Under the pieces are notes generated by a model. The model did not search any database. It was not told the DNA's origin and saw only the letters and a program-made list of their open reading frames with translations. A stretch of 63,829 bases of DNA, counting the filler, from Platydemus manokwari (Eukaryota), in NCBI GenBank assembly GCA_037951405.1. It is 6 parts of 6 records of this genome, joined end to end, with 100 filler letters (N's around TTAATTAATTAA, not from the genome) between each part and the next. Parts side by side here need not be neighbours in the genome. Positions count along the whole stretch, not along the records: positions 11,492 to 23,155 come from JBBMOY010537774.1; 5 more parts are not named here. One strand, 5' to 3'. Position 1 is the stretch's first letter; each line of letters begins with the position of its first letter. Shown here piece by piece: positions 11,492-23,155 of this stretch. The position numbers and the translations under genes are program-made.

Positions 11492-12388
11492 TGTTCAGCG
11501 TTATAACAATTTGTGTTAATAAAATACCTGCATAAAAACATGAATAACTTTTGACTCAACCTGGTATAGTTAATCGATATATTATTTAGGTGCAAAAATA
11601 ATGATAATGATTATTGTTCAAATTGCCTTCCACCAAAACTGTTTTTTACAAAGCATATATCAGTGAACTAAAACAGCACAATACACACACACGCGCACAC
11701 ACACATTTCATTCAATTGGTATAAAAATTATTTGTCCTATCTATTATTCTTTATTCTTTTGATTTGTCTCGATAGTTTCAAATCCAACTCCAATATCACA
11801 TTTCAATATAATCCAAACTGATAAATCTTCCAATAGAACCGAACGAAAAATATCTAATAAAAATCTCATTTGATAACCACCATGCTGATGACAATTGAAT
11901 ATGTACAATTTTCAACTCAATTTTCAAACACAAATCTTCTTTTCAAATGATTTGAAAGCCAACGAGATGCCATTGGTAAAAATACGAAATCTAAGAGTCC
12001 AATTCAGCAACAACCACCATATCAAGTCTTATAAGACCACCACTAACACTGGTATTTCGATGAAATAAATTTCTGATGTATAAATATACCCTTCTGAATA
12101 TATTTTTATCTGATTTGACGACAAAGAACTTGTCTATATCACAATATGATCTCCATCCACCAATTTATGGTACACATGTCAATGTCACGACTAAACTTGA
12201 AAATCCTTAAATATTGAAATGTAGAGATGATAAATTAATGTCTGTGAATTAGAATCTATCAAAAATAATCCTTTTCCTGACAACCAAATACCTTAATGGT
12301 TTAATAATTGTGTAGAACCAATCAGATTACATTTTAACGATTACGTCATACACAAGATCACAGGTCATCATCGATCTATTAATCTTAC

Positions 12389-12734
12389 CCCATGGAATGC
12401 TTTAACAATGCTAGATTAGCCGAAACATCATTGTCCATGTTGTCCTCGTTTCTTGCTATCTCTATTTTGTATACGAATTGCAAACACATTCCATTACTTT
12501 CCCCATTATTAGTATTCAACCAAGAACTCCATAATCGAGCAGAATGTTTTTTAATGTTAGGTATTTTCAGCCCGACAGGTCTCATACATGCAGCATCACC
12601 GATTTTAGGTCCATAATTCATTGATTCCCAAACAGCCGTTTGATCTCGTGGATCAGTATTCCATTGACAGAATCTATCTCCATAATTGAATTGACAGTCG
12701 ATCACAGATCGAGTAACATGATCATTTTTTTCTA
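12389..12734 (-). CDS. Variable exon V13 (class B MAM-like part-domain, VEKNDH...LALLKHSMG)
   Basis: Acceptor ttttatAG, donor GG|GTAAGA, 346 nt (1 mod 3), open frame. Confidence 0.88.
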
Positions 12735-15700
12735 CTATAAAAGAAGTTATTCTTATAAACTGTGAGTATTGTGTTAAATAGAACACGGCAACGTCACGGA
12801 ACTATCATCTTTTGAATTCAATTTCATTTTTATTTAAATTCTATATTTGATAAACAAAATCTAATGAATCAGATTGTAAATCATAATTGATAATATTGAA
12901 AGAAAATATAATTTCATAATCATGACGTCATCGTATATTGTTACAATTCGAAAAATTATCTTTTATTACGTCATATAATATTGCCACAGAATTTTTGACA
13001 TAATTCTTCCTTAATCACTTATCAAGATCAATATTAATGATATAATTTATTATCAGGTTCTATTATAATCATTTATTCTTCATCAACTATTGTTGTTTCC
13101 ATACACCTCCGATGAAAACATTGCCCCATCATGGTATAACTTGAATTTTTAAAACTCTAACTTGGAGACGTTATTTTCCATGATATAAAACTATAATTAT
13201 AAATAATAATTTCACTATCTTCATTCATCAAACAGACCCTAATCTTACCCCATTGTATGTTTCAATAATGCTAAATTAGCCAAAACATCATTGTTCCCAT
13301 TATCTTCATTTTTCTCCATTTCTATTTTGTACACGAATTGCAAACACAAACCATTATTGTTTAAATTTTTAGTGTACAACCAAGAACTCCACAACCTGGC
13401 TGAATGCTTTTTAATATTGGGAAAATTTGATGCCACCGGTCTCATACATGCAGCATCACCGATAATCGATCCATAATTCATTGATTCCCAAACAGCTGTC
13501 TGATCTCTTGGATCATCTTTCCAACGACAAAATTGATCTCCATAATTGAATTGACAGTCTAATATAAATTTGGCATCTTGCCCTCGTTGTACCGCTAAAA
13601 GAATTTATTTTGTTTATGAATTTCACAACTATTCAGTTAAAGAGAACATGGCATCGAAAAGGACAACTTGATTTGTTTTTAATTCGAATTTTGGTTTTAT
13701 GTGAAATAAATCATTGATATTGCATCATCGGCATTAATTCATACGTTCAATAAATCGCAGAATAATGCATGTTGTTAAGAATTAATAATAAAAAACTTAA
13801 TAAACATATTTTCTCTCGATATGTCACATCAAATCCTGTGATATTTGAAAGAAAGATTTTAAATTTCTTCTGACTATTTTCTAAAACAAATTCAGAAGCA
13901 AATTTCAGCAATAATTCTTGATCGATATCTTCGATAGTTAGGTCGAAATCAAAAATACCTTAATATAGCTCAAATAATTTCTAGAATCTGTCAACAAGAA
14001 TCAAACAAGCCCATTTCGTATGAAATAGATGAACGTTGTGATGTTTTGAATATCTACCGAATTACAGAGGATAATCGAGAATATTCGATATACATCAATC
14101 AACACTCGAATCGTAGATGTTATTAACAAAGGTATCGACTTAATCATTTCTCTGAGAATATGTCAAATCCAATGGAAATTCTTAAAACTACAACTATTGC
14201 GGATCTTTTTCTTAGATTGATTATAATTAGTCTTGAACCTTATTTTATTTATGATCAAAAATAGCTTGATCAATAAACCTTACCCCATTGTATGTTTCAT
14301 CAATGCTAAATTAGCCAAAACATAATTGTTCTCATTATCTTCATTTTTCTCCATTTCTATTTTGTACACGAATTGCAAACACAATCCCGTATTATTCATA
14401 TTTTTAGTGTACAACCAAGAACTCCACAATCTAGCTGAATGCTTTCTAATATTGGGAAAACTTGATGACACCGGTCTCATACATGCAGCATCACCGATAA
14501 TCGGTCCATAATTCATTGATTCCCAAACAGCTGTCTGATCTCTTGGATCATCATTCCATTTACAAAATTGATCTCCATAATTGAATTGACAGTTCAATAC
14601 AGAATGAGCTTTTTGCCTGTTTTGTATCGCTAAAAGGATTTATTTATATTAAATTACTGGCAATTCCATGGACAGAGAACATGACATCGTGTTGGAACAA
14701 ATATCGCTATACTTAAATGATTTTTTTAATATTCAGTATATCGTGCACCATAAAAATCAAACTATAGTCTGTCATCCTTTTTAAAGACTGAAAGTACTTC
14801 AAACTTGCTTGCCCTTCATTTCCTCACCATACTCACTGTCAAATTGTCAGTAAATAAATAAATCTACAATTCCCATTATCATATTTCTGATAAATTCACA
14901 TTTTTCTCTATCCATATGTTTTGACCAACTATCTTCATAAATAATATTAGAACATAAACTTATCCACTCACCCATCGGAATGTTTCAAAAGCGACAGTAC
15001 TGCTTGGTTTTTATTTTCCTGTCTATCATCACCACCATTATTGTAATCAATATCGATTCTGTATGACAATTTCAAACAAATGTCTTTCGATTTTTCGTTT
15101 TCCAAATTCAACCAAGAACTCCACAAACGGGCAGAATGTTTGTTTACAATCGATATTTTAGACATTATCGGTCTCATACAAGCAGCATCGCCAATAATCG
15201 GTCCGAAATTCCTCGATTCCCAAACGGCAGTTTTATCTCTGGGATCATCATTCCAACGGCAAAAATTGTCCTCATTATCAAATTTACAATTAAGTTTCCT
15301 CTCAATTTTCCCAGCTGCAATTAAAGAATGAGGCTACAACATTTTCCAATAAAAAGTATGCACTGAACAAGATCGATTGCAAAGCAACTTGAATATTGAG
15401 TCAATGAAATGACTTTTACAATATTTTTATTCACAAAAATTTGATCTCCAACTCACCCATCCGAATGTTTGAGAAGAGACAAAGTTACATTTTTCAGAAA
15501 TCCAAAATCGTTCTCTATATAATAACTAAATCGTAAGCATTTTCCAATATCCGTTTCTGCAGTCAACCATTGACTCCATAGTCGACCACTGTACTTCGTT
15601 TGTCTTCGATAACTGATAGGCTTCATACACGCTGATTCACCAATAATTCCGCCGTAGTTTTTTGATTCCCATAATTTCGTTCTATCTCGTGGATCGAGAT

Positions 15701-18700
15701 ACCAATTACAAAACGATTTGGGTTTGAACTCACAATTTAAAACACTTTGGAAATTCTCATTTGTATTGGTGTACTCTACAACCAATCAAATTTGATTTGT
15801 AATTTATTGGTTATTTATTTACTGCAGAAATCAAAGCTCGTTTTCATTTGTTGTTTTGGTTTTTTAAAAAAATATGAGTTTTATTATTTAATTTAATTAT
15901 TCTTACCCCATTTCTCGCCTCATTAAAGTAAGTTTACTCAGATTTGATGCTGGCATGTTATCTATTTTATAACTGAAAGACAGGCATCCGAGAGAAATTT
16001 TTTTTGAAATTACAGGACCCCACAACCGTGCTGTCAAACTCTTCGTAGTTAGAGGATCAAATACCAGACCATCATTTGTTTCTTCGCTTGCTTCCATGCA
16101 CATTGCCTTATTTCTTACGGAACCGGGAATATTAAAAACTTTCCAGTTAATCATCCAATTATTATTGTCATTGCTCCAATAACAGAGATTATTTCTTTCA
16201 AAGTCACATGAAATCTTAGAATTGAATTTAGAGAACTGATTGCTCCCTAAATTACATTACTCAATGACCATTATTTTTTATAAAACATCGTTGATATGGC
16301 TAGTTACTTGGCAACAAATGTTTGTTAACAAGAATTTATTTTTTAATACAAATTTAAATCACCTTAATAACCATTCTTATTCAATTGAACATTTAATAAA
16401 ATCTTCTTTTATTTTTATTTGTGTAAATAAATTGACACAAAAAATAATATTTGTGTTATAAAAACTAAATTTCTATTGGTTGGAAAATTAGACCAATAGA
16501 AACACACCTACCCCATTTCTCTTCTCATCAATGTCAGTTTATTATCATTGCTATTAAACAATTTGTATTTAAAAGTAACACAACGCAATTCTTGATCGGC
16601 TGTCATCGATGGGCTCCAAAGTCGTATTGTCAATATTTCGTTTTTCAATCGAGCAGCTTGACTCATTTTCGGGGAACTTAAACACGTCGCTCGATTTATT
16701 CCGTATTTATTGTCAATTCTATGAATTTTCCAATTCGTCATCCAATTGTTGGCATCATTCATCCAATTACATAAATTATTAGACTCAAAATTACAATCCA
16801 AATCACTGGAAGCTGAAATTAGAAAATTCCTTATTTTAAAAAGGAGCCTAACATTGAGAACAGAGCTCTATTGAATGTATAAAGTCGGTTAAAGACATTA
16901 CCATTTGTTAAAGTTCTAACCCACAAAATTTTCAATGAATCTCAAAAACAACTGGTTATAAAATGTTCATGTTTCTCTTATTACTAACCCCATTTCTCTT
17001 CTCATCAAAGTTAATTTCATTGGTAGATCTCCATCGATTCTGTACTGAAATGAGAAACATCCCAGTACAACTTTCTTCAACACTTCCGGTCCATACAATC
17101 TGGCGGTCAACGAGTCATCACTAATATCTTCAGGAAATTTCAGACATGCTCCACCATTTTCTTGGTTATCATTTGTAAATCCAATCGAATTAAGTGATGT
17201 TTGTTTCCAATTCAATTTCCAATTATTCGGATCATTGTTCCATTTACAAAAACCATTATTGAAAGAACAATCCAAATCCGATACCGCTAAAATCATAGAT
17301 TATCTTAATAAATAGAATCTCAATCGTCATTAAAATACTGAAGAACAAAGCTCGATCACGGTTACGGTTGTCCGTTAGACCAGTTTAATTTATTAAACAC
17401 GCTTTCACACGAAATATCGATATTCCTCAAAGAGCCTTTATTAGCTATTTTATTTAAACAGCCCATACTTGACAAGGCTGGTTTGTTCGGTATTTCGATG
17501 AGCTTGTTGTAATAATTTCATCGCTTTGGAGAGAGCAGCTTGCAACAATTATATGGGAAAGATTTCCGAAATTACATTTCATTTGATAAGCACAGCAAAA
17601 CAAACTCATATATAAATTGTTTCAATTGTTTCTCCAGCGTTGGAGACAATAAATAATTTTCAATATTTTAATGTAATTTACCAACAATTTTCATTTACTA
17701 ACCCCATTTCACGTCTCATCAATGTGAGACGTGTAAAATTATCCTTTTCCATTCTATATTGGAACATTATACAACCCAATTTGACATTTTTCAATATTTC
17801 CGGCCCCCATAATCGAGCAGTTAATAGTTGATAATTAATATTTTCCGTTGATTTCAAACATGCTCCTCCGTTTTCCTGATTGTCATGGTTCATAAATCCA
17901 ATCGAATCAAGAGACGTTTGTTTCCAATTCAATTTCCAATTGTTCTGATCGTTACTCCAATTACAAAACCCGTTCTCGAAAGAACAATCTATGTCCGAGT
18001 TCGCTAAAACGTGCCAAAATGTCACAGTAATAATTTAACTTAAAATTGTCTCAAATGTGCTGAGAACAAGCTCATACTGATTAGATTTCCCCAATAAAAT
18101 TTGTCAATTAAACATGGTTTGAGTATTTCGATTTTACTAACCCCATTTCTCGTCTCATCATCGTCAACTTCATATTTTCATCATTTTCCATTTTGTAAGC
18201 GAAAGAAACACAACCCAATTTGACTCCACTATAGATTACCGGACCCCAGAGTCGACCGGTCAATGCTTTTTCATTGGTCAATTTGTCCATGTTGACATTT
18301 CCAGTTAACTTCAAGCAAGCTTCTCGACGTATCAGGACCCAATTCAACAACCAATTATTGAAATCATTTGCCCATCTACAGAAACCATTATCGAAGTTAC
18401 AATCCAATTCCGTCGTCACTGAAGACAGAAAGACCCAAGATATAAAAGAATTTTTATAAATCGATCATGATCTGAGAACAAAACTAATTGTGGATCACAT
18501 TTGTTTGTCATTTTTATTAACATAATCATCATCTTCTTTTCGATTAATGAATCTTTCTAATAGGGTAACATGGCCTAATAATCCATATTCCAAGAAAAAC
18601 TATTCAAAAAAGATCTATATTCTTCAGTGCATTCTGATTGAAAACAAAATGCGTAAATCGATATCGATGAACAATTTGTTATGAGATTCAACAAAAATTT

Positions 18701-21614
18701 GTATGGCAAAATAATTAACATTTTAATGAAATTAAAACTCCAGAAAATTCTCAGAAGAATTCCTAATAAATAACCAGAGATATCAAAGCAAATTATGTCA
18801 AAATTTTCCTTCTATTATAATACTGCGAAAAAACTGTTTGAAAATTTGATGATAAAATAATCGATTTTAGTATTTCTATTTCACTAACCCCATTTCTCGT
18901 CTCATCATCGTGAGCTTCATATCTTCGACATTTACCATTTTATACACAAATGACACACAACCCAATTTGATTCCACTAAAAATTACCGGACCCCAAAGTC
19001 GAGCTGTTAAAGCTTTTTCATTGGTCAATTTAAACATATTGGGATTGCCCCATAATTTCAAACAAGCTTCTCGATTCACTCGTACCCAATTCAACATCCA
19101 ATTATTGGGATCATTTGACCATCTACAGAAATCATTATCGAAGTTACAATCCAATTCCGATAGCACTGAAGGTAAAAAAAAAAGACCAAAGGTATAAAAT
19201 AGAATTCATTAATCGATCATGATCTGAGAACAAAACTACTTATTAATTTGTCAGTATCTTCAATTTCGTATTTCAATTCCGTTCTTGTTAACTGGAATTA
19301 AGAGATTTTATAATTGATAAGAATCGGAGAACAATGGAAAACGTCACAATTCCTCAATATTTTATACACTGTCAAAGATGTACACCAAGAAACAATACTG
19401 ATCGGAAGAAAGTAAATTTCAATGCTAATATAAAAGCCACTGAGAAATTTGCTTAAAGATTCCAATGATAGATCAAAGTAAATCTTAATTCCATTTTTAT
19501 GCAAATTTAATAACAGATCATAATAATCCATAATCATATTCAATTACATTTCTTCATTTCAAATTGACCAATCGTATTTGCCATAAATAATTGATCGATT
19601 CAAACAATGATAATTTACTGAATCATAGATTTCAATCAATATTGCTATATCATTCTAATTATAACAATCACCACCAATTTCATTCTTAATTAGTCGACTA
19701 AGGCACGTTACAAAATAATAAAACATTTGCTTATCGACTAACCCAATCTCTCGACGCATCAATGTCAGTTTATGATCATCGCTATTGAACAATCGATAAT
19801 TAAACGAAATACAGCTCAAATTGGACTTTTTCGACATCACTTGACTCCAAAGTCTAGCAATCAACTTTTGATCCGGTTCTTCATTGTCCGATCCATCGGT
19901 TCTCATGCACACGGCCTTATGATCGATTTGCGGTTGATCTAAAAATCCCAACGTTTCCAAAGCCACGATTTCCCAATTCAATTTCCAATTATTTGGATCG
20001 TTGGCATATTTGCAAAGCCCATTTTCAAAATTGCAATCCAAATGTGAGGAGGCTGAAAATTTTTAATTTGAATGATTTTTGTGTGTGTCTCTGTCAGTGT
20101 TATAAAAGGAAAATAATTCATCAGCTGAAAAATTATGAATTTTCTGAGAACAAGACTGAATGGAAGGTCTTGTTTTGAAATTTATCCAGGAAAAACAGCA
20201 AAAATCTTGGACGAATTGTAAAGAATTGTTTCGTCATGTGTTCGAAGAAAGTGCTCGGTTCGTGTGAAGAGATGAAGAAATACGATTGAGAAATCCAATG
20301 ATCTTTCAGCATAATAATAATCACATTTATTTTAATGACGAATAAGAAATCTTTTATTTTTTTTTAATAATAAATCGGTTCAGTGAGAGATACACGAATT
20401 CTGCAATTCCTAGCAGACGATCGTTTCCAAGGATTCTAATTATCATATATCGTTTGCTTTTCACCTGAATTAAAAAAAACCAAAATGACATGAAAATGAA
20501 CATCAAATCGATATCAATAAAGGCGGATCCATGTTTTCCTTCTAGACAGTGTAATCATAGATAAATGGATATAACAACATAATAAATCAATTCCTGGATA
20601 AAATATTGCCAAGCAACTCTTCTAATAATGCCTTCAAGGACGTACAAATTGAACACAAAATATAAACAGATGCCATTATATTTACACAAATTTCGATAGA
20701 AACACCATTCTTATCCTTACAACAAGGGTCAAATAGAAACACCATTACCAAAAATAGACAGCCAATCAGAGACAATTACATCGATGACAACAGTGCATTA
20801 CGCCGCCACATGCCAATTGATTTAAACAAATCGAAAAAATTAATTCAATGCTATGAATTCCATTGATTATCGATGAAATCGATATTTTCCATGTATAAAA
20901 AATCAATAAATATTTCACTAACCTCATTTCGCGTCGCAGCAAAGTGATTTTGGTGTTTCCAGATTTTATGTAATTAAAACTGATACATTTAAGTGAGGTC
21001 TTTTGATTAGACTTCCTAACGACAGGCGACAACAGTCGAACAGCATTCAAAGTTTCACTGCCACCAAAATTTTCATTTTCAACATTATCAAGACTTATGC
21101 AAATTCCATTGGTTTTAAATTCGGTGGATTTTTCACGATCCAGATAATTGAGATTGGTCACTTTCCAATTCGTAATCCAATTGTTCCCATCGTTAATCCA
21201 TTGACAGAGATTGTATTCGAACTGACAGTCGATATTCCAGGAATTATATTTTCCTATTTCATGTCTATATTACAGCAAATCTATTCGATTATGTTCAAGT
21301 TATTAAAAGTTCTTTATAGTGGCACATGCTATTCTATTACGTAATAATATCATATTTTTCCAAATACGCATAATGAGTCATCTACCAAGCACTTCTACAG
21401 TTTCCCTTAAACAAATTTAATCTAGAATTTTATTATTTTAAAATAGTTATTTTTTTCCCTGTATTTCTAGAGTAACCAAACGTAAAATTTAGTAATAGAT
21501 TTTATAGTTCCAAGCAACGAGCCTTGTTCTCAGTGCATTTACAAAAAATAAAGAATAATAATTACCTGCCGCGTAACCCATAATACACAAAAACAAAATC
21601 GCTTTCATAGTCAT
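12389..21614 (-). CDS. MAM-like domain gene, 5' part: signal-peptide exon plus 13 mutually exclusive variable exons (constant 3' exons not resolved)
   Basis: Leader exon has a phase-1 donor. Thirteen paralogous exons have AG/GT boundaries, all phase 1 to 2, with the motif C-x-F-x(3-5)-C-x-W...RL(W)xx...C-x-x-F-x-Y typical of the N-terminal part of MAM domains. Docking/selector complementarity is present. Confidence 0.85.
12780..12805 (-). promoter_or_regulatory. Selector sequence for V13
   Basis: + strand AGAACACGGCAACGTCACGGAACTAT versus docking sense AGAACAAGGC-TCGTTGCTTGGAACTAT, about 46 nt upstream of the acceptor. Confidence 0.72.
13249..13594 (-). CDS. Variable exon V12 (class B, AVQRGQD...LALLKHTMG)
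   Basis: Acceptor tcttttAG, donor GG|GTAAGA, 346 nt, open frame. Confidence 0.88.
13642..13656 (-). promoter_or_regulatory. Selector sequence for V12
   Basis: + strand GAGAACATGGCATCG versus docking GAGAACAAGGC-TCG. Confidence 0.7.
14284..14629 (-). CDS. Variable exon V11 (class B, AIQNRQK...LALMKHTMG)
   Basis: Acceptor ccttttAG, donor GG|GTAAGG, 346 nt, open frame. Confidence 0.88.
14668..14698 (-). promoter_or_regulatory. Selector sequence for V11
   Basis: + strand ATGGACAGAGAACATGACATCGTGTTGGAAC versus docking ATGCACTGAGAACAAGGC-TCGTTGCTTGGAAC. Confidence 0.75.
14972..15314 (-). CDS. Variable exon V10 (class B, AGKIERKLNCKF...LSLLKHSDG)
   Basis: Acceptor aattgcAG, donor GG|GTGAGT, 343 nt, open frame. 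Confidence 0.88.
15358..15380 (-). promoter_or_regulatory. Selector sequence for V10
   Basis: + strand ATGCACTGAACAAGATCGATTGC versus docking ATGCACTGAGAACAAGGCTCGTTGC. Confidence 0.75.
15457..15775 (-). CDS. Variable exon V9 (class B, EYTNTNE...LSLLKHSDG)
   Basis: Acceptor ggttgtAG, donor GG|GTGAGT, 319 nt, open frame. Confidence 0.86.
15821..15842 (-). promoter_or_regulatory. Selector sequence for V9
   Basis: + strand ACTGCAGAAATCAAAGCTCGTT versus docking ACTG-AGAA--CAAGGCTCGTT. Confidence 0.68.
15907..16246 (-). CDS. Variable exon V8 (class A, GSNQFSKFNSKISCDFE...LTLMRREMG)
   Basis: Phase-1 acceptor taatttAG, donor GG|GTAAGA, 340 nt, open frame. Confidence 0.84.
16298..16315 (-). promoter_or_regulatory. 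Selector sequence for V8 (pairs with the distal half of the docking site)
   Basis: + strand GGCTAGTTACTTGGCAAC versus docking GGCTCGTTGCTTGG-AAC, about 52 nt upstream of the acceptor. Confidence 0.62.
16512..16812 (-). CDS. Variable exon V7 (class A, ASSDLDCNFE...LTLMRREMG)
   Basis: Acceptor aatttcAG, donor GG|GTAGGT, 301 nt, open frame. Confidence 0.88.
16852..16868 (-). promoter_or_regulatory. Selector sequence for V7
   Basis: + strand CATTGAGAACAGAGCTC versus docking CACTGAGAACAAGGCTC. Confidence 0.75.
16989..17286 (-). CDS. Variable exon V6 (class A, AVSDLDCSF...LTLMRREMG)
   Basis: Acceptor gattttAG, donor GG|GTTAGT, 298 nt, open frame. Confidence 0.88.
17337..17354 (-). promoter_or_regulatory. 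Selector sequence for V6
   Basis: + strand ACTGAAGAACAAAGCTCG versus docking ACTG-AGAACAAGGCTCG. Confidence 0.78.
17703..18003 (-). CDS. Variable exon V5 (class A, ANSDIDCSF...LTLMRREMG)
   Basis: Acceptor cgttttAG, donor GG|GTTAGT, 301 nt, open frame. Confidence 0.88.
18053..18073 (-). promoter_or_regulatory. Selector sequence for V5
   Basis: + strand AAATGTGCTGAGAACAAGCTC versus docking AAATGCACTGAGAACAAGGCTC. Confidence 0.82.
18142..18418 (-). CDS. Variable exon V4 (class A, VTTELDCNF...LTMMRREMG)
   Basis: Acceptor gtcttcAG, donor GG|GTTAGT, 277 nt, open frame. Confidence 0.88.
18472..18485 (-). promoter_or_regulatory. Selector sequence for V4
   Basis: + strand CTGAGAACAAAACT versus docking CTGAGAACAAGGCT: 14 bp including 2 G-U pairs. 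Confidence 0.8.
18889..19165 (-). CDS. Variable exon V3 (class A, VLSELDCNF...LTMMRREMG)
   Basis: Acceptor accttcAG, donor GG|GTTAGT, 277 nt, open frame. Confidence 0.88.
19224..19237 (-). promoter_or_regulatory. Selector sequence for V3
   Basis: + strand CTGAGAACAAAACT versus docking CTGAGAACAAGGCT: 14 bp including 2 G-U pairs. Confidence 0.8.
19743..20052 (-). CDS. Variable exon V2 (class A, ASSHLDCNFE...LTLMRREIG)
   Basis: Acceptor attttcAG, donor GG|GTTAGT, 310 nt, open frame. Confidence 0.88.
20144..20157 (-). promoter_or_regulatory. Selector sequence for V2
   Basis: + strand CTGAGAACAAGACT versus docking CTGAGAACAAGGCT: 14 bp including 1 G-U pair, about 92 nt upstream of the acceptor. 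Confidence 0.8.
20923..21253 (-). CDS. Variable exon V1 (class A, divergent, GKYNSWNIDCQFE...ITLLRREMR)
   Basis: Phase-1 acceptor gaaatAG (weak pyrimidine tract), donor AG|GTTAGT, 331 nt, open frame. Confidence 0.8.
21501..21540 (-). promoter_or_regulatory. Intronic docking site (transcript sense AAAUGCACUGAGAACAAGGCUCGUUGCUUGGAACUAUAAA)
   Basis: Single GC-richer island about 25 nt downstream of the leader-exon donor, reverse-complementary to the motif upstream of V2-V13. Confidence 0.85.
21566..21614 (-). CDS. Leader exon encoding a signal peptide MTMKAILFLCIMGYAA
   Basis: ATG, basic residue, hydrophobic core and small residues at the end. Donor CAG|GTAAT is phase 1, matching all 13 variable-exon acceptors. 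Confidence 0.85.
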
Positions 21615-23155
21615 CTAAATAAAGAAAAACTTGTAAATTCAGAATTTCTTAAATATATTTAATAAAAATAAAAAAGTTCAATACAATTCCATAAATTTGG
21701 TTTTGACGCTTAAAAAATTATTCTCCAAACTTATTCATTAAATTAATTATAAAATTAATCATATTTATTAGATAAATATATTAAAAAATCCAAATGAGAA
21801 GGTTGACAGGTATTGAAACATTATTTAAAAATTTTTAAATTATTTTTACGATTTATTTTTCCAATTAAATGGTAAGATTTTAAAACTTACCATAAACAAT
21901 GAATAGTATTTCAAATAACACAGAATGAGTAATAAAAGTTAAATTTTCCACAAATAAGATTGAAAAATTAATATATATAAACAAATCAATTTGAAACAAA
22001 TTTTTTATTAGGTTTAAATCTGATGTACAGATTTTTCATCACAGTAATCTTTTTTTTGCTTATTTTATCGTTTAAAAACTATAATTTAATTTTATACATC
22101 AAGTTCGATCGTAAGTTGCATTTACCAAAATAATTCACATTTTTTAAATTCAAATTCTTATGACATTCATTCATCTTTTCTTTTAACCAAATAATTATCA
22201 GATAAAATTTTTTATGGAAATTTATAAGCAAAAATACGGGTGTTTAATTCTCAATAGTTAAAATTTTCATATTTAATCCCTTCATTTAATAATTTAAGCA
22301 ATTTTATAAATGAATCCCGTTGCTTTTGAGAATATTTTAATTAAAAATTTTATTCCAGCAAATTGTGCTGCATCGTCATTTTACTTGGAGCAATTTTCTA
22401 CCTGGAGTCAATAGATTTTGACGTATATGAGTTATGCTAAAGTAAAAAATTATTCAAAATATTTCCATAAAAATTTGCTGTTGAAGTTATTTAAATATAT
22501 AACTAATTTTATTTTCATACTAATTTCACTTAGCCATTTATTTTATTATTTTTGATAAAAACAAGAATTTTTTTATATTTCATCATTAACCAAAAACAAA
22601 TACCAATCAATTTCTTCAGTAGAATACGCGATTATTAATTTTGCTTAAACGATTTAAATGATAAAAGTGGCTTACTTTAAGAAGAAAAATAATAATTTTT
22701 ATGGTTATCTTAATTTTTTGTTATATACTTAAAATATTATATATTGAGAATTTTATCGAGAAAATTATAGAGATTTAAGTTTAATAAATTAGTAGTGATA
22801 TAAACCAATATTTGACACTACACTCTTGATTTATTTTTATATTTAATTATCATTAACTTTCTTTATAATATTCACTAGATCACTTTGTTCGTTTCTAGAT
22901 TCGCTCATTTGTTCATATTATAAAAAATAATTACAATTAAATATTAAAATAATTTGATAATAAAATGCCAGATACTAGTTTATACCACTGCTACGATCAT
23001 AAAATAAAAATTTATACTATAACATGAAATTCTAAAAAAATTATAATAAGAAATTTATAGAGAAAAATTCATAAAATTTCATAAAAAAAATTTATAATCA
23101 TAAAATAAAAATATCACGTAATTTGAACAACTATATTAAAAATATAAAAATAGGT

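Follow-up and report, generated by a model that had tools for sequence, protein, structure and literature searches.

A cluster of 13 homologous exons in the genome of Platydemus manokwari is best explained, with a probability that we put at roughly three in four, as an array of mutually exclusive exons chosen by competing RNA pairing, with incompatibility of reading frame as a second layer. The cluster was studied in a window of 63,829 nt (six parts of the genome joined end to end), where it sits in the piece at positions 11,492-23,155, from JBBMOY010537774.1; the gene is read on the minus strand.

In the proposed mechanism the region would be the 5′ part of a gene for a secreted or surface MAM-domain protein. 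A common leader exon would supply the signal peptide and the 13 mutually exclusive exons (V1 to V13) would come next, each supplying the N-terminal ∼95 of ∼158 MAM positions, including four conserved cysteines. A lone docking site in the leader intron would pair with one selector at a time, and the pairing would most likely activate the acceptor just downstream, by analogy with Dscam exon 6. With a leader donor in phase 1 and V exons running from phase 1 to phase 2, the next exon would have to accept phase 2; an mRNA with two V exons or none would be out of frame, would meet a stop almost at once without making protein, and nonsense-mediated decay would probably remove it. One V exon per mRNA, with frame incompatibility as a backstop, is thus the best reading of the sequence.

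Anatomy and reading frame of the array

The leader exon and the V exons are located as follows (a slash marks an exon end here and below).

Leader exon: 21566-21614, minus strand, starts with ATG, ends after 16 codons and one base; donor G/gtaatt in phase 1
V1: 20923-21253, minus strand, 331 nt, phase 1 to 2; MAM score 31.1 bits, profile positions 1-89
V2: 19743-20052, minus strand, 310 nt, phase 1 to 2; MAM score 38.9 bits
V3: 18889-19165, minus strand, 277 nt, phase 1 to 2
V4: 18142-18418, minus strand, 277 nt, phase 1 to 2
V5: 17703-18003, minus strand, 301 nt, phase 1 to 2; MAM score 40.3 bits
V6: 16989-17286, minus strand, 298 nt, phase 1 to 2
V7: 16512-16812, minus strand, 301 nt, phase 1 to 2
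V8: 15907-16246, minus strand, 340 nt, phase 1 to 2
V9: 15457-15775, minus strand, 319 nt, phase 1 to 2
V10: 14972-15314, minus strand, 343 nt, phase 1 to 2
V11: 14284-14629, minus strand, 346 nt, phase 1 to 2
V12: 13249-13594, minus strand, 346 nt, phase 1 to 2
V13: 12389-12734, minus strand, 346 nt, phase 1 to 2; the array's final exon within the piece

The lengths are exactly those given in the original prediction, all 1 mod 3, and the phases are 1 to 2 in all 13 exons. All 13 V exons have AG directly before them and GT directly after, with donors gtaag, gttag, gtgag or gtagg. Read in the correct frame, in which two bases finish a split codon, none of the 13 exons contains a stop; the two other frames hold 5-16 stops each. 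The gaps from V1 to V13 are, in order, 870, 577, 470, 138, 416, 176, 265, 131, 142, 342, 689 and 514 nt. Thirteen open frames of ∼100 codons lie within DNA of ∼33% G+C, with nine distinct lengths (277-346 nt) in a single residue class, a pattern far beyond chance: under random indels the lengths alone would have a probability of (1/3)^8 or less. The V exons are tandem homologs with a common splice-site pattern, phase and similar length; these are the features (similar length, conserved splice sites and frame, homology) by which mutually exclusive exons are predicted in published work (PMC3923563).

Pairwise protein identity among the V exons is 22-83%, and the four conserved cysteines are kept in all 13. 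V1 is an outlier that ends AG/gt rather than GG/gt, has no selector and sits on a long branch; V9 is the start of a second subfamily, with a DPRD motif and the ending LLKHSxG. A scan for the MAM domain (PF00629; Pfam cut-off 26.4 bits) left out V4, V6 and V11, and all ten exons scanned encode positions 1 to 82-95 of 158. Scores were above the cut-off in the scanned exons of the V1-V8 group (27.9-40.5 bits) and below it in V9, V10, V12 and V13 (16.7-21.2 bits), with the profile region unchanged. None of the scanned exons contains a complete domain of ∼158 positions, which is expected if the remainder lies in downstream exons. In the solved structure of the neuropilin-1 MAM domain (5L73), the V-exon profile aligns with the first half, residues 21-106. 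It had been argued that the array leaves no room for an intervening second-half exon: the gaps of 131-142 nt are real, and the profiles of downstream exon types match nowhere in the piece. The exon downstream of V13 lies past the edge of the piece, with its acceptor phase outside view.

The original prediction argued against reading the array as 13 tandem MAM repeats, and such a reading is indeed untenable, because a phase-2 donor joined onto a phase-1 acceptor shifts the frame; V-to-V joining leads to a stop 3-27 codons into the second exon. Skipping all V exons would shift the frame too, the leader donor being in phase 1 and the V donors in phase 2. The idea of a reading-frame safeguard therefore holds as regards frame incompatibility. 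It is a less likely reason for the 1-mod-3 rule, since the phase pair is family-wide: it recurs in all complete units of the exon family from Opisthorchis, Fasciola, Paragonimus and Echinococcus and is thus an inherited property. As judged from the sequences compared, the rule is inherited from one ancestral exon and did not evolve exon by exon; an exon with an indel of any other size would be lost, as each must fit both neighbours, and this keeps the rule in place. The safeguard possibly leaks at two places, an internal CAG 7 nt inside V7 and an internal AG 13 nt inside V11, both in frame after another V exon; a frame-restoring acceptor is absent in 10 of 12 V exons.

Proposed docking site and selectors

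The leader intron contains a site complementary to selectors (core TTGTTCTCAG) that lie 37-90 nt 5′ of the acceptors of V2-V7 and V9-V12. Distances below are to the acceptor and energies are in kcal/mol.

Docking site: 21510-21540, minus strand, 31 nt, 25 nt 3′ of the leader-exon donor; core CTGAGAACAAGGCTCG at 21518-21533
V2 selector: 20143-20168, minus strand, 90 nt 5′, dG −24.1
V3 selector: 19218-19243, minus strand, 52 nt 5′, dG −23.3
V4 selector: 18466-18494, minus strand, 47 nt 5′, dG −26.0
V5 selector: 18052-18079, minus strand, 48 nt 5′, dG −28.2
V6 selector: 17336-17360, minus strand, 49 nt 5′, dG −28.1
V7 selector: 16850-16878, minus strand, 37 nt 5′, dG −25.8
V8 selector, weak, split and uncertain: 16262-16312, minus strand, dG −20.8, large loops
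V9 selector: 15822-15843, minus strand, 46 nt 5′, dG −23.3
V10 selector: 15357-15381, minus strand, 42 nt 5′, dG −27.3
V11 selector: 14667-14696, minus strand, 37 nt 5′, dG −23.6
V12 selector: 13641-13671, minus strand, 46 nt 5′, dG −21.8
V13 selector, weak and uncertain: 12754-12798, minus strand, core GTGTTCTAT, dG about −20 (−19.8 / −20.3)

In the search for the docking site, 1,939 31-nt windows were ranked by summed pairing energy to 12 pre-acceptor zones. The docking site is the single outlier: all of the top four windows overlap it, it sums to −303 (z about −6), whereas the windows average −130 (sd 27), the next unrelated window reaches −214, and none of 300 shuffles attained its value. 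The duplexes for V2-V7 and V9-V12 range from −21.8 to −28.2 kcal/mol. Scanning every 36-nt window gave 12 minus-sense peaks of −21.8 or lower, 10 of them at the selector position; on the control strand nothing was below −20.8 apart from the docking site's own complement. Selectors are thus clear for ten exons (V2-V7 and V9-V12) and weak for V8 and V13; V1 has none, its best pairing to the docking site being −10.8. The V8 selector is without the TTGTTCTC core; in the docking site it pairs mostly with the 3′ half. Pairing reaches past the common core, and the portion of the docking site involved varies from exon to exon, which makes a shared protein-binding motif a poor explanation. In a second species (contigs L001, L007 and L008), with exons 45-76% identical in protein to the V exons, TTGTTCTCAG is the sole conserved block in otherwise unalignable pre-acceptor introns. 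Pairing between docking site and selectors is likely to be the primary selection device.

The selector core resembles a 3′ splice site (pyrimidines then CAG), and a protein-mediated or decoy-site role of the core may be considered.

It is possible, though in our estimate unlikely, that exclusivity comes mainly from the reading frame and nonsense-mediated decay, with permissive splicing and RNA pairing irrelevant. The frame incompatibility is real, with its stops 3-27 codons into the second V exon, and introns of 131-142 nt are long enough for splicing, so that steric hindrance cannot block V-to-V joining. Moreover, trematode and tapeworm arrays keep the phases although k-mer and energy scans, perhaps too crude, detected no docking/selector pair in Opisthorchis, Fasciola, Paragonimus and Echinococcus; the pairing device may be lineage-specific. 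With 13 competent exons, however, decay alone would waste most transcripts, and the unique docking site and the positioned, conserved selectors would be left unexplained.

Leader exon, selection and related arrays in flatworms

The leader exon encodes a hydrophobic, signal-peptide-like peptide, MTMKAILFLCIMGYAA, with an in-frame TAG immediately 5′ of its ATG, and its donor phase is that of the V acceptors. No second leader-like exon was found within the piece, introns included. Fasciola and O. felineus have similar leaders, which again end in phase 1. In O. felineus the gene model TGZ67784.1 (203 aa over 66 kb) takes a single exon from each of two arrays: its leader is joined to unit 7 of the V array (at least 17 units) and then to unit 9 of a second array (18 units). 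The annotation of O. felineus drew on Trinity, Cufflinks and PASA transcripts (PMC6530080); part of TGZ67784.1 may be a computational prediction, and the model seems to be cut short at the 3′ end.

Could the V exons instead be variable first coding exons, each with its own promoter or a trans-spliced leader, as in protocadherin or chelicerate sDscam? Flatworms do use spliced-leader trans-splicing (PMC6530080), and V1 is without a selector. Yet no V exon has its own start with an ATG and signal peptide, every V acceptor matches the single leader in phase, the introns hold no other leader-like exon, the docking site is located in the leader intron, and the O. felineus model links the leader to an internal V exon; we consider the first-exon arrangement very improbable.

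The expectation that all V exons are under purifying selection is supported: their frames and splice sites are intact, dN/dS is 0.07-0.57 in the closest paralog pairs, and a second species has one-to-one orthologs of V2, V5, V6 and V7. The suggested comparison of dN/dS among paralogous exons was run on the closest pairs and gave 0.07 for V5/V6, 0.23 for V3/V4 and 0.57 for V11/V12. In the second species the V2 ortholog is in L007 (support 100/98), and L008 carries orthologs of V6 (100/97) and V7 (94/92); the V5-V6-V7 order is collinear, with ortholog support of 94-100%. There is accordingly little to recommend a mostly unused array, with one or a few V exons constitutive and the others silent duplicated relics. 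The strong divergence of V1 would agree with it, but all 13 exons retain an open frame, their two splice sites and the four cysteines, dN/dS is <1, individual exons have orthologs in another species, and intact arrays of 12-19 units persist in distant flatworms.

The V-exon family, with the same phases, is present in arrays of trematodes and tapeworms, where a second array further downstream codes for the next part of the MAM domain. In a phase survey of Opisthorchis, Fasciola, Paragonimus, Echinococcus and species B (loci L004 and L005 overlap), the best crude acceptor was in phase 1 in 56 of 61 units, and the complete units (five loci, four flatworm species and species B) all end GG/GT. Public trematode and tapeworm gene models concatenate 2-8 units, clipping exons or reading through introns; the sequence ...RRQEG followed by FTVNV, for instance, is a read-through of GG/GTTCAC.... 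Tandem inclusion of repeated half-MAM units, with the frame rescued by alternative acceptors or micro-exons, draws on such models and on the frame-compatible internal AGs of V7 and V11, but can be practically set aside, because the models keep frame by read-through or clipping, half a jelly-roll domain cannot fold alone, 10 of 12 exons offer no frame-restoring acceptor, and the 131-142 nt introns already hold a selector and have no space for a micro-exon.

Comparison with known systems

We suggest tentatively, at slightly less than even odds, that a Dscam-like diversity gene is conserved among flatworms (A+T-rich P. manokwari, human liver flukes, blood flukes and tapeworms), and that its first cluster is run in P. 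manokwari by an independently evolved docking/selector system. If so, one MAM domain would be made from one of 13-19 first-part exons and one of 12-20 middle-part exons, giving hundreds of secreted or surface isoforms, which would have escaped notice so far because the exons are run together in all public annotations. The docking/selector mechanism for large exon clusters would then reach beyond arthropods, and parasitic flatworms would have a candidate family of self-recognition or host-interface receptors.

The V exons share conserved cysteines and the RLxSP motif with the MAM domains of neuropilin-1/2 and enteropeptidase (PDB 5L73, 7T4S and 8H3S), to whose first halves the V-exon profile aligns, but each codes for only part of the domain. 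A general class of mutually exclusive exons, used in prediction, is tied to nonsense-mediated decay by lengths that are not multiples of three (PMC3923563; PMC5740500). As in that class, double inclusion or skipping of V exons would lead to a frame shift and an early stop; in contrast to it, the frame in the V array would be an added layer beside RNA pairing, with decay presumed. Competing RNA structures originate by tandem exon duplication (PMC6071210), and the V array has the same pattern, with selectors that would have been copied together with the exons and a single complementary site outside the duplicated unit. In alternative-promoter clusters (protocadherin, sDscam) the arrangement differs, since V exons have acceptors and lack a start codon and signal peptide of their own.

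Among the closest parallels is the Dscam1 exon 6 cluster of insects and crustaceans, with its docking site and selector sequences (PMC7430681, PMC8042237, PMC4691838), a system for which PMC3923563 cites Graveley 2005. Both have a tandem array of homologous alternative exons, each of which codes for the N-terminal portion of a single extracellular domain, and a lone docking site in the intron that directly follows the constitutive exon 5′ of the array. Complementary selectors lie 5′ of the variable exons (in the V array clear for ten, weak for V8 and V13 and absent for V1), and one would pair at a time; in both, automatic annotation concatenates the exons. The V array differs in belonging to another gene, with a MAM rather than an immunoglobulin domain, in a flatworm and not an arthropod; it has 13 exons against dozens and a first exon without a selector, and Dscam1 has the repressor hrp36. 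Unlike Dscam1 exon 6, too, the related flatworms have a second array, so that one domain would be assembled from two choices.

Anatomy, reading frame and coding content of the V exons

The thirteen V exons, putative alternative exons that each encode the first part of a MAM domain, lie on the minus strand at 12389-21253, within a piece (11492-23155) that is A+T-rich (G+C 17-39%). We reproduced all 13 base for base, with the predicted lengths of 331, 310, 277, 277, 301, 298 and 301 nt for V1-V7 and 340, 319, 343, 346, 346 and 346 nt for V8-V13, every one of which is 1 mod 3. AG precedes and GT follows each exon; the last two exonic bases before gt are GG in 12 of the 13 and AG in V1. When the first two bases are used to complete a split codon, the frame thus opened contains no stop in any of the 13 exons, with 5-16 stops in each of the other two frames; since all the lengths are 1 mod 3, the entry phase is 1 and the exit phase 2 for every V exon. 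The introns within the array are 131-870 nt long.

Leader exon and possible frame-compatible internal acceptors
21566-21614, minus strand: leader exon, an ATG with an in-frame stop before it, 16 hydrophobic signal-peptide-like codons and one further base, followed by gtaatt
16806-16812, minus strand: internal AG of V7, 7 nt inside the exon (at the end of CTTCCAG)
14617-14629, minus strand: internal AG of V11, 13 nt inside the exon

The one base left over after the 16 codons of the leader places its donor in phase 1. No second leader-like exon was found anywhere in the piece. On the upstream side of the leader, a pyrimidine run with AG (tctttatttag, 21615-21625, minus strand) abuts the ATG and is a possible acceptor, receiving either a 5' UTR exon or a trans-spliced leader. 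The 1.5 kb further upstream (21650-23155) has a G+C content of 17-24% and contains neither a long open frame nor an Rfam match.

Any second V exon joined after a first is read in an incompatible frame and meets a stop 3-27 codons in, so the array does not encode one protein with 13 repeats, as the original prediction had argued. The two internal AGs, which are frame-compatible after another V exon, are possible leaks in this frame safeguard. At 16686, also in V7, a contig from the one sequencing run that contains the stretch, a DNA run, has A where the reference has G, at a depth similar to that of the reference and with a Thr to Met change; the difference is probably allelic. Over 15650-21649 the contigs of this run gave patchy coverage, this single variant and no informative junctions.

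In the ten V exons that were scanned, the match to the Pfam MAM profile runs from position 1 to positions 82-95 of 158; the curated cut-off is exceeded by the seven scanned members of the V1-V8 group, and V9, V10, V12 and V13 fall below it over the same region. A profile of the V exons aligns with the first half of the neuropilin-1 MAM domain (5L73, residues 21-106), as well as with the MAM structures of neuropilin-2 and enteropeptidase. Four cysteines and an RLW(S/G)P motif are kept. The exons make two subfamilies, V1-V8 ending in ...LMRREMG and V9-V13 ending in ...LLKHSxG and carrying a DPRD motif.

The second half of the domain was searched for in the same piece. Profiles of the downstream exons of Echinococcus and Paragonimus gave no match in it, in agreement with the earlier claim that no second-half exons intervene between the V exons. 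Profile and Pfam searches of the 900 nt after V13 likewise found no sequence of the second array that follows the V exons in these parasites. Several minus-strand stretches in 11492-12388, one with an in-frame TAA, resembled the end of a MAM domain by eye; Pfam gives no match in them, and they were rejected as a constant downstream exon. The next exon of the gene is taken to lie beyond the edge of the piece; it would have to accept phase 2 and, as in Echinococcus and Opisthorchis, may be the first of a second array. A short CA/CG dinucleotide microsatellite (acacacacacgcgcacacacac) is located at 11686-11706, downstream of the array.

A candidate docking site and its selectors

Docking site
21510-21540, minus strand: docking site, 31 nt with core CTGAGAACAAGGCTCG at 21518-21533, 25 nt past the leader donor

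The docking site is complementary to selectors (core TTGTTCTCAG) situated 37-90 nt upstream of the acceptors of V2-V7 and V9-V12, with duplex energies of -21.8 to -28.2 kcal/mol. Pairing is weaker for V8 and V13 (about -20), and V1 has no partner (best -10.8). When every 36-nt window of the transcript was scanned against the docking site, 12 peaks reached -21.8 or lower, 10 of them in pre-acceptor position; on the control strand nothing fell below -20.8 except the docking site's own complement. All 1,939 windows of 31 nt in the transcript were also ranked, the criterion being summed pairing energy with the 12 pre-acceptor zones. The top four windows all overlap the docking site (-303, vs a mean of -130 with an sd of 27), the next unrelated window reaches -214, and none of 300 shuffles of the docking site attains its value. 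The pairing runs past the shared core into parts of the docking site that differ from exon to exon, as RNA-RNA pairing, unlike a common protein-binding motif, would predict.

Energy scans were needed to see these pairs: a gapless 16-mer search recovered the selector of V2 only, and in an inverted-repeat search A+T-rich matches predominated, with the docking/selector pairs absent from the output. No Rfam family was matched. The selector core also resembles a 3' splice site, with pyrimidines and then CAG (e.g. at 18059-18068, 18471-18480 and 19223-19232). As a speculative variant, the core might act as a decoy acceptor masked by pairing with the docking site.

V1 is divergent in several ways. 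It is without a selector, has the longest branch of the tree and closes on a split codon of AG+N rather than GG+N; the V1-V2 intron, at 870 nt, is the largest of the array. V1 may be a default choice or may be on its way out.

Relatives of the V exons in flatworms

When V5 was used for an exhaustive protein search, 91 relatives emerged, and unnamed open reading frames from short contigs were the closest of these; a word-index search with V8 returned no matches. Three contigs from one sample, SRR33002330 (L001, L007 and L008; G+C 39-41%), which represent a second species, carry eleven V-type exons (45-76% protein identity), and the complete ones all run from phase 1 to phase 2. In the tree V2, V5, V6 and V7 each pair with a single exon of the second species (bootstrap 92-100%); the counterparts of V5, V6 and V7 keep a collinear order. 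TTGTTCTCAG or a one-base variant precedes the second-species exons, the remaining intron sequence being unalignable; among 18 aligned pre-acceptor segments from both species the selector core is the only conserved block. With these orthologs across species and a dN/dS of 0.07-0.57 among the closest paralogous V exons, the V exons are under long-term purifying selection, as had been predicted. A metagenome scan with a V5/V6 profile yielded two weak, uninformative loci, and an Atlas search gave generic MAM clusters only.

The named relatives are all from flatworms (Opisthorchis viverrini, O. felineus, Fasciola, Paragonimus, Schistosoma, Echinostoma, Echinococcus, Hydatigera, Spirometra, Dibothriocephalus and Mesocestoides) and their annotation goes no further than hypothetical or MAM domain-containing. 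Their loci contain arrays of 12-19 V-type exons, with both V subfamilies present in trematodes and tapeworms. Every complete unit ends in GG before GT, and the best crude acceptor is in phase 1 in 56 of 61 units (two of the loci overlap); the leader exons of Fasciola and O. felineus end in phase 1 too. Thus, the phase 1-to-2 pattern is ancestral to the V-exon family. The exon signature of the family, the leader and the structure of the array have counterparts in platyhelminth records only, which is the basis for assigning the array to a probable flatworm. In the loci of Opisthorchis, Fasciola, Paragonimus and Echinococcus no shared k-mer had a reverse complement, and a docking/selector pair was not found; an energy scan of the O. 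felineus leader intron showed no outlier window (best z -3.1, explained by G+C content).

Public gene models join 2-8 V units through intron read-through or exon clipping (KAF5402576.1, THD28415.1, KER26251.1, OON20520.1, CDS19891.1, VDM35283.1 and others, from trematodes and tapeworms). Such concatenated models probably do not exist as proteins. Automatic annotation of Drosophila genomes is known to make the same concatenation error at the Dscam and Mhc clusters (PMC3923563).

In Echinococcus, Paragonimus and O. felineus the V array is followed by a second array, of 12 to at least 20 units. Its unit consists of a 48-nt exon (C..I.DP.TG..) and an exon with LW...W..(I/V)DL...DF(Q/K) directly before gt, the latter encoding the middle of the MAM domain.

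Second arrays, with positions along each locus
L006 19118-29424: Echinococcus granulosus
L005 29541-44295: Paragonimus heterotremus
L009 54328-82288: Opisthorchis felineus

The O. felineus phases here are 2 to 2 and then 2 to 0, making consecutive units again frame-incompatible. One O. felineus model, TGZ67784.1, has 203 aa spread over 66 kb (L009 8539-74940). A two-codon first exon and the leader are joined to the 7th of at least 17 V units, the rest of the V array is skipped, and eight units of the second array are passed over before the 9th of 18 is used; the junction phases are 1, 2, 2 and 0. A model of this shape is unlikely to come from ab initio prediction. Trinity, Cufflinks and PASA transcripts went into the O. 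felineus annotation (PMC6530080), and TGZ67784.1 therefore gives indirect support for splicing of one exon per cluster. Its last exon, of 8 codons, lies inside the second array, so that the model probably has either a truncated or an alternative 3' end. An AlphaFold model of the protein (mean pLDDT 61, with meaningless Foldseek matches) was set aside.

Proposed choice of a single exon and comparison with known systems

By analogy with Dscam exon 6, the docking site would pair with one selector per transcript, and this pairing would activate the V exon just downstream. Transcripts with two V exons or none would be unproductive and probably cleared by nonsense-mediated decay. RNA pairing is the probable primary selector of exactly one V exon. 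The uniform exon length, which the original prediction had read as a safeguard for this choice, is no evidence for a purpose-built one because the rule was inherited from the ancestral exon.

Trematodes and tapeworms of medical importance also carry the V-exon family, in mis-annotated form; if they make a hypervariable secreted MAM protein, it would bear on cell recognition or host-parasite interaction. For annotation, the rule is to expect phase 1 to 2 in V-family exons and never to concatenate them. With whole introns of only 131-870 nt, the array would also be a compact system for dissecting the mechanism.

In Dscam exon 6, according to the account of Graveley (2005) cited in PMC3923563, a docking site follows the constitutive exon and a selector precedes each variable exon, an architecture also described in PMC7430681, PMC8042237 and PMC4691838. 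The V array shows this layout in large part, with the docking site past the leader, clear selectors before ten V exons, weaker ones before V8 and V13 and none before V1. To our knowledge, arthropod Dscam1 is essentially the sole source of large mutually exclusive clusters that depend on a docking site, and the other cases are small clusters (arthropod 14-3-3 zeta and Mhc, mammalian dynamin-1 and ATE1). Within the literature searched, of which coverage is incomplete, no account of a flatworm MAM exon array came to light. The class of mechanism is already known; what appears to be new is the MAM domain, the probable flatworm origin, the clean docking site and the family-wide conservation with a second array. 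A cluster of 13 MAM exons with the architecture of Dscam1, in a gene unrelated to it and in another phylum, would represent a clear instance of convergent evolution.
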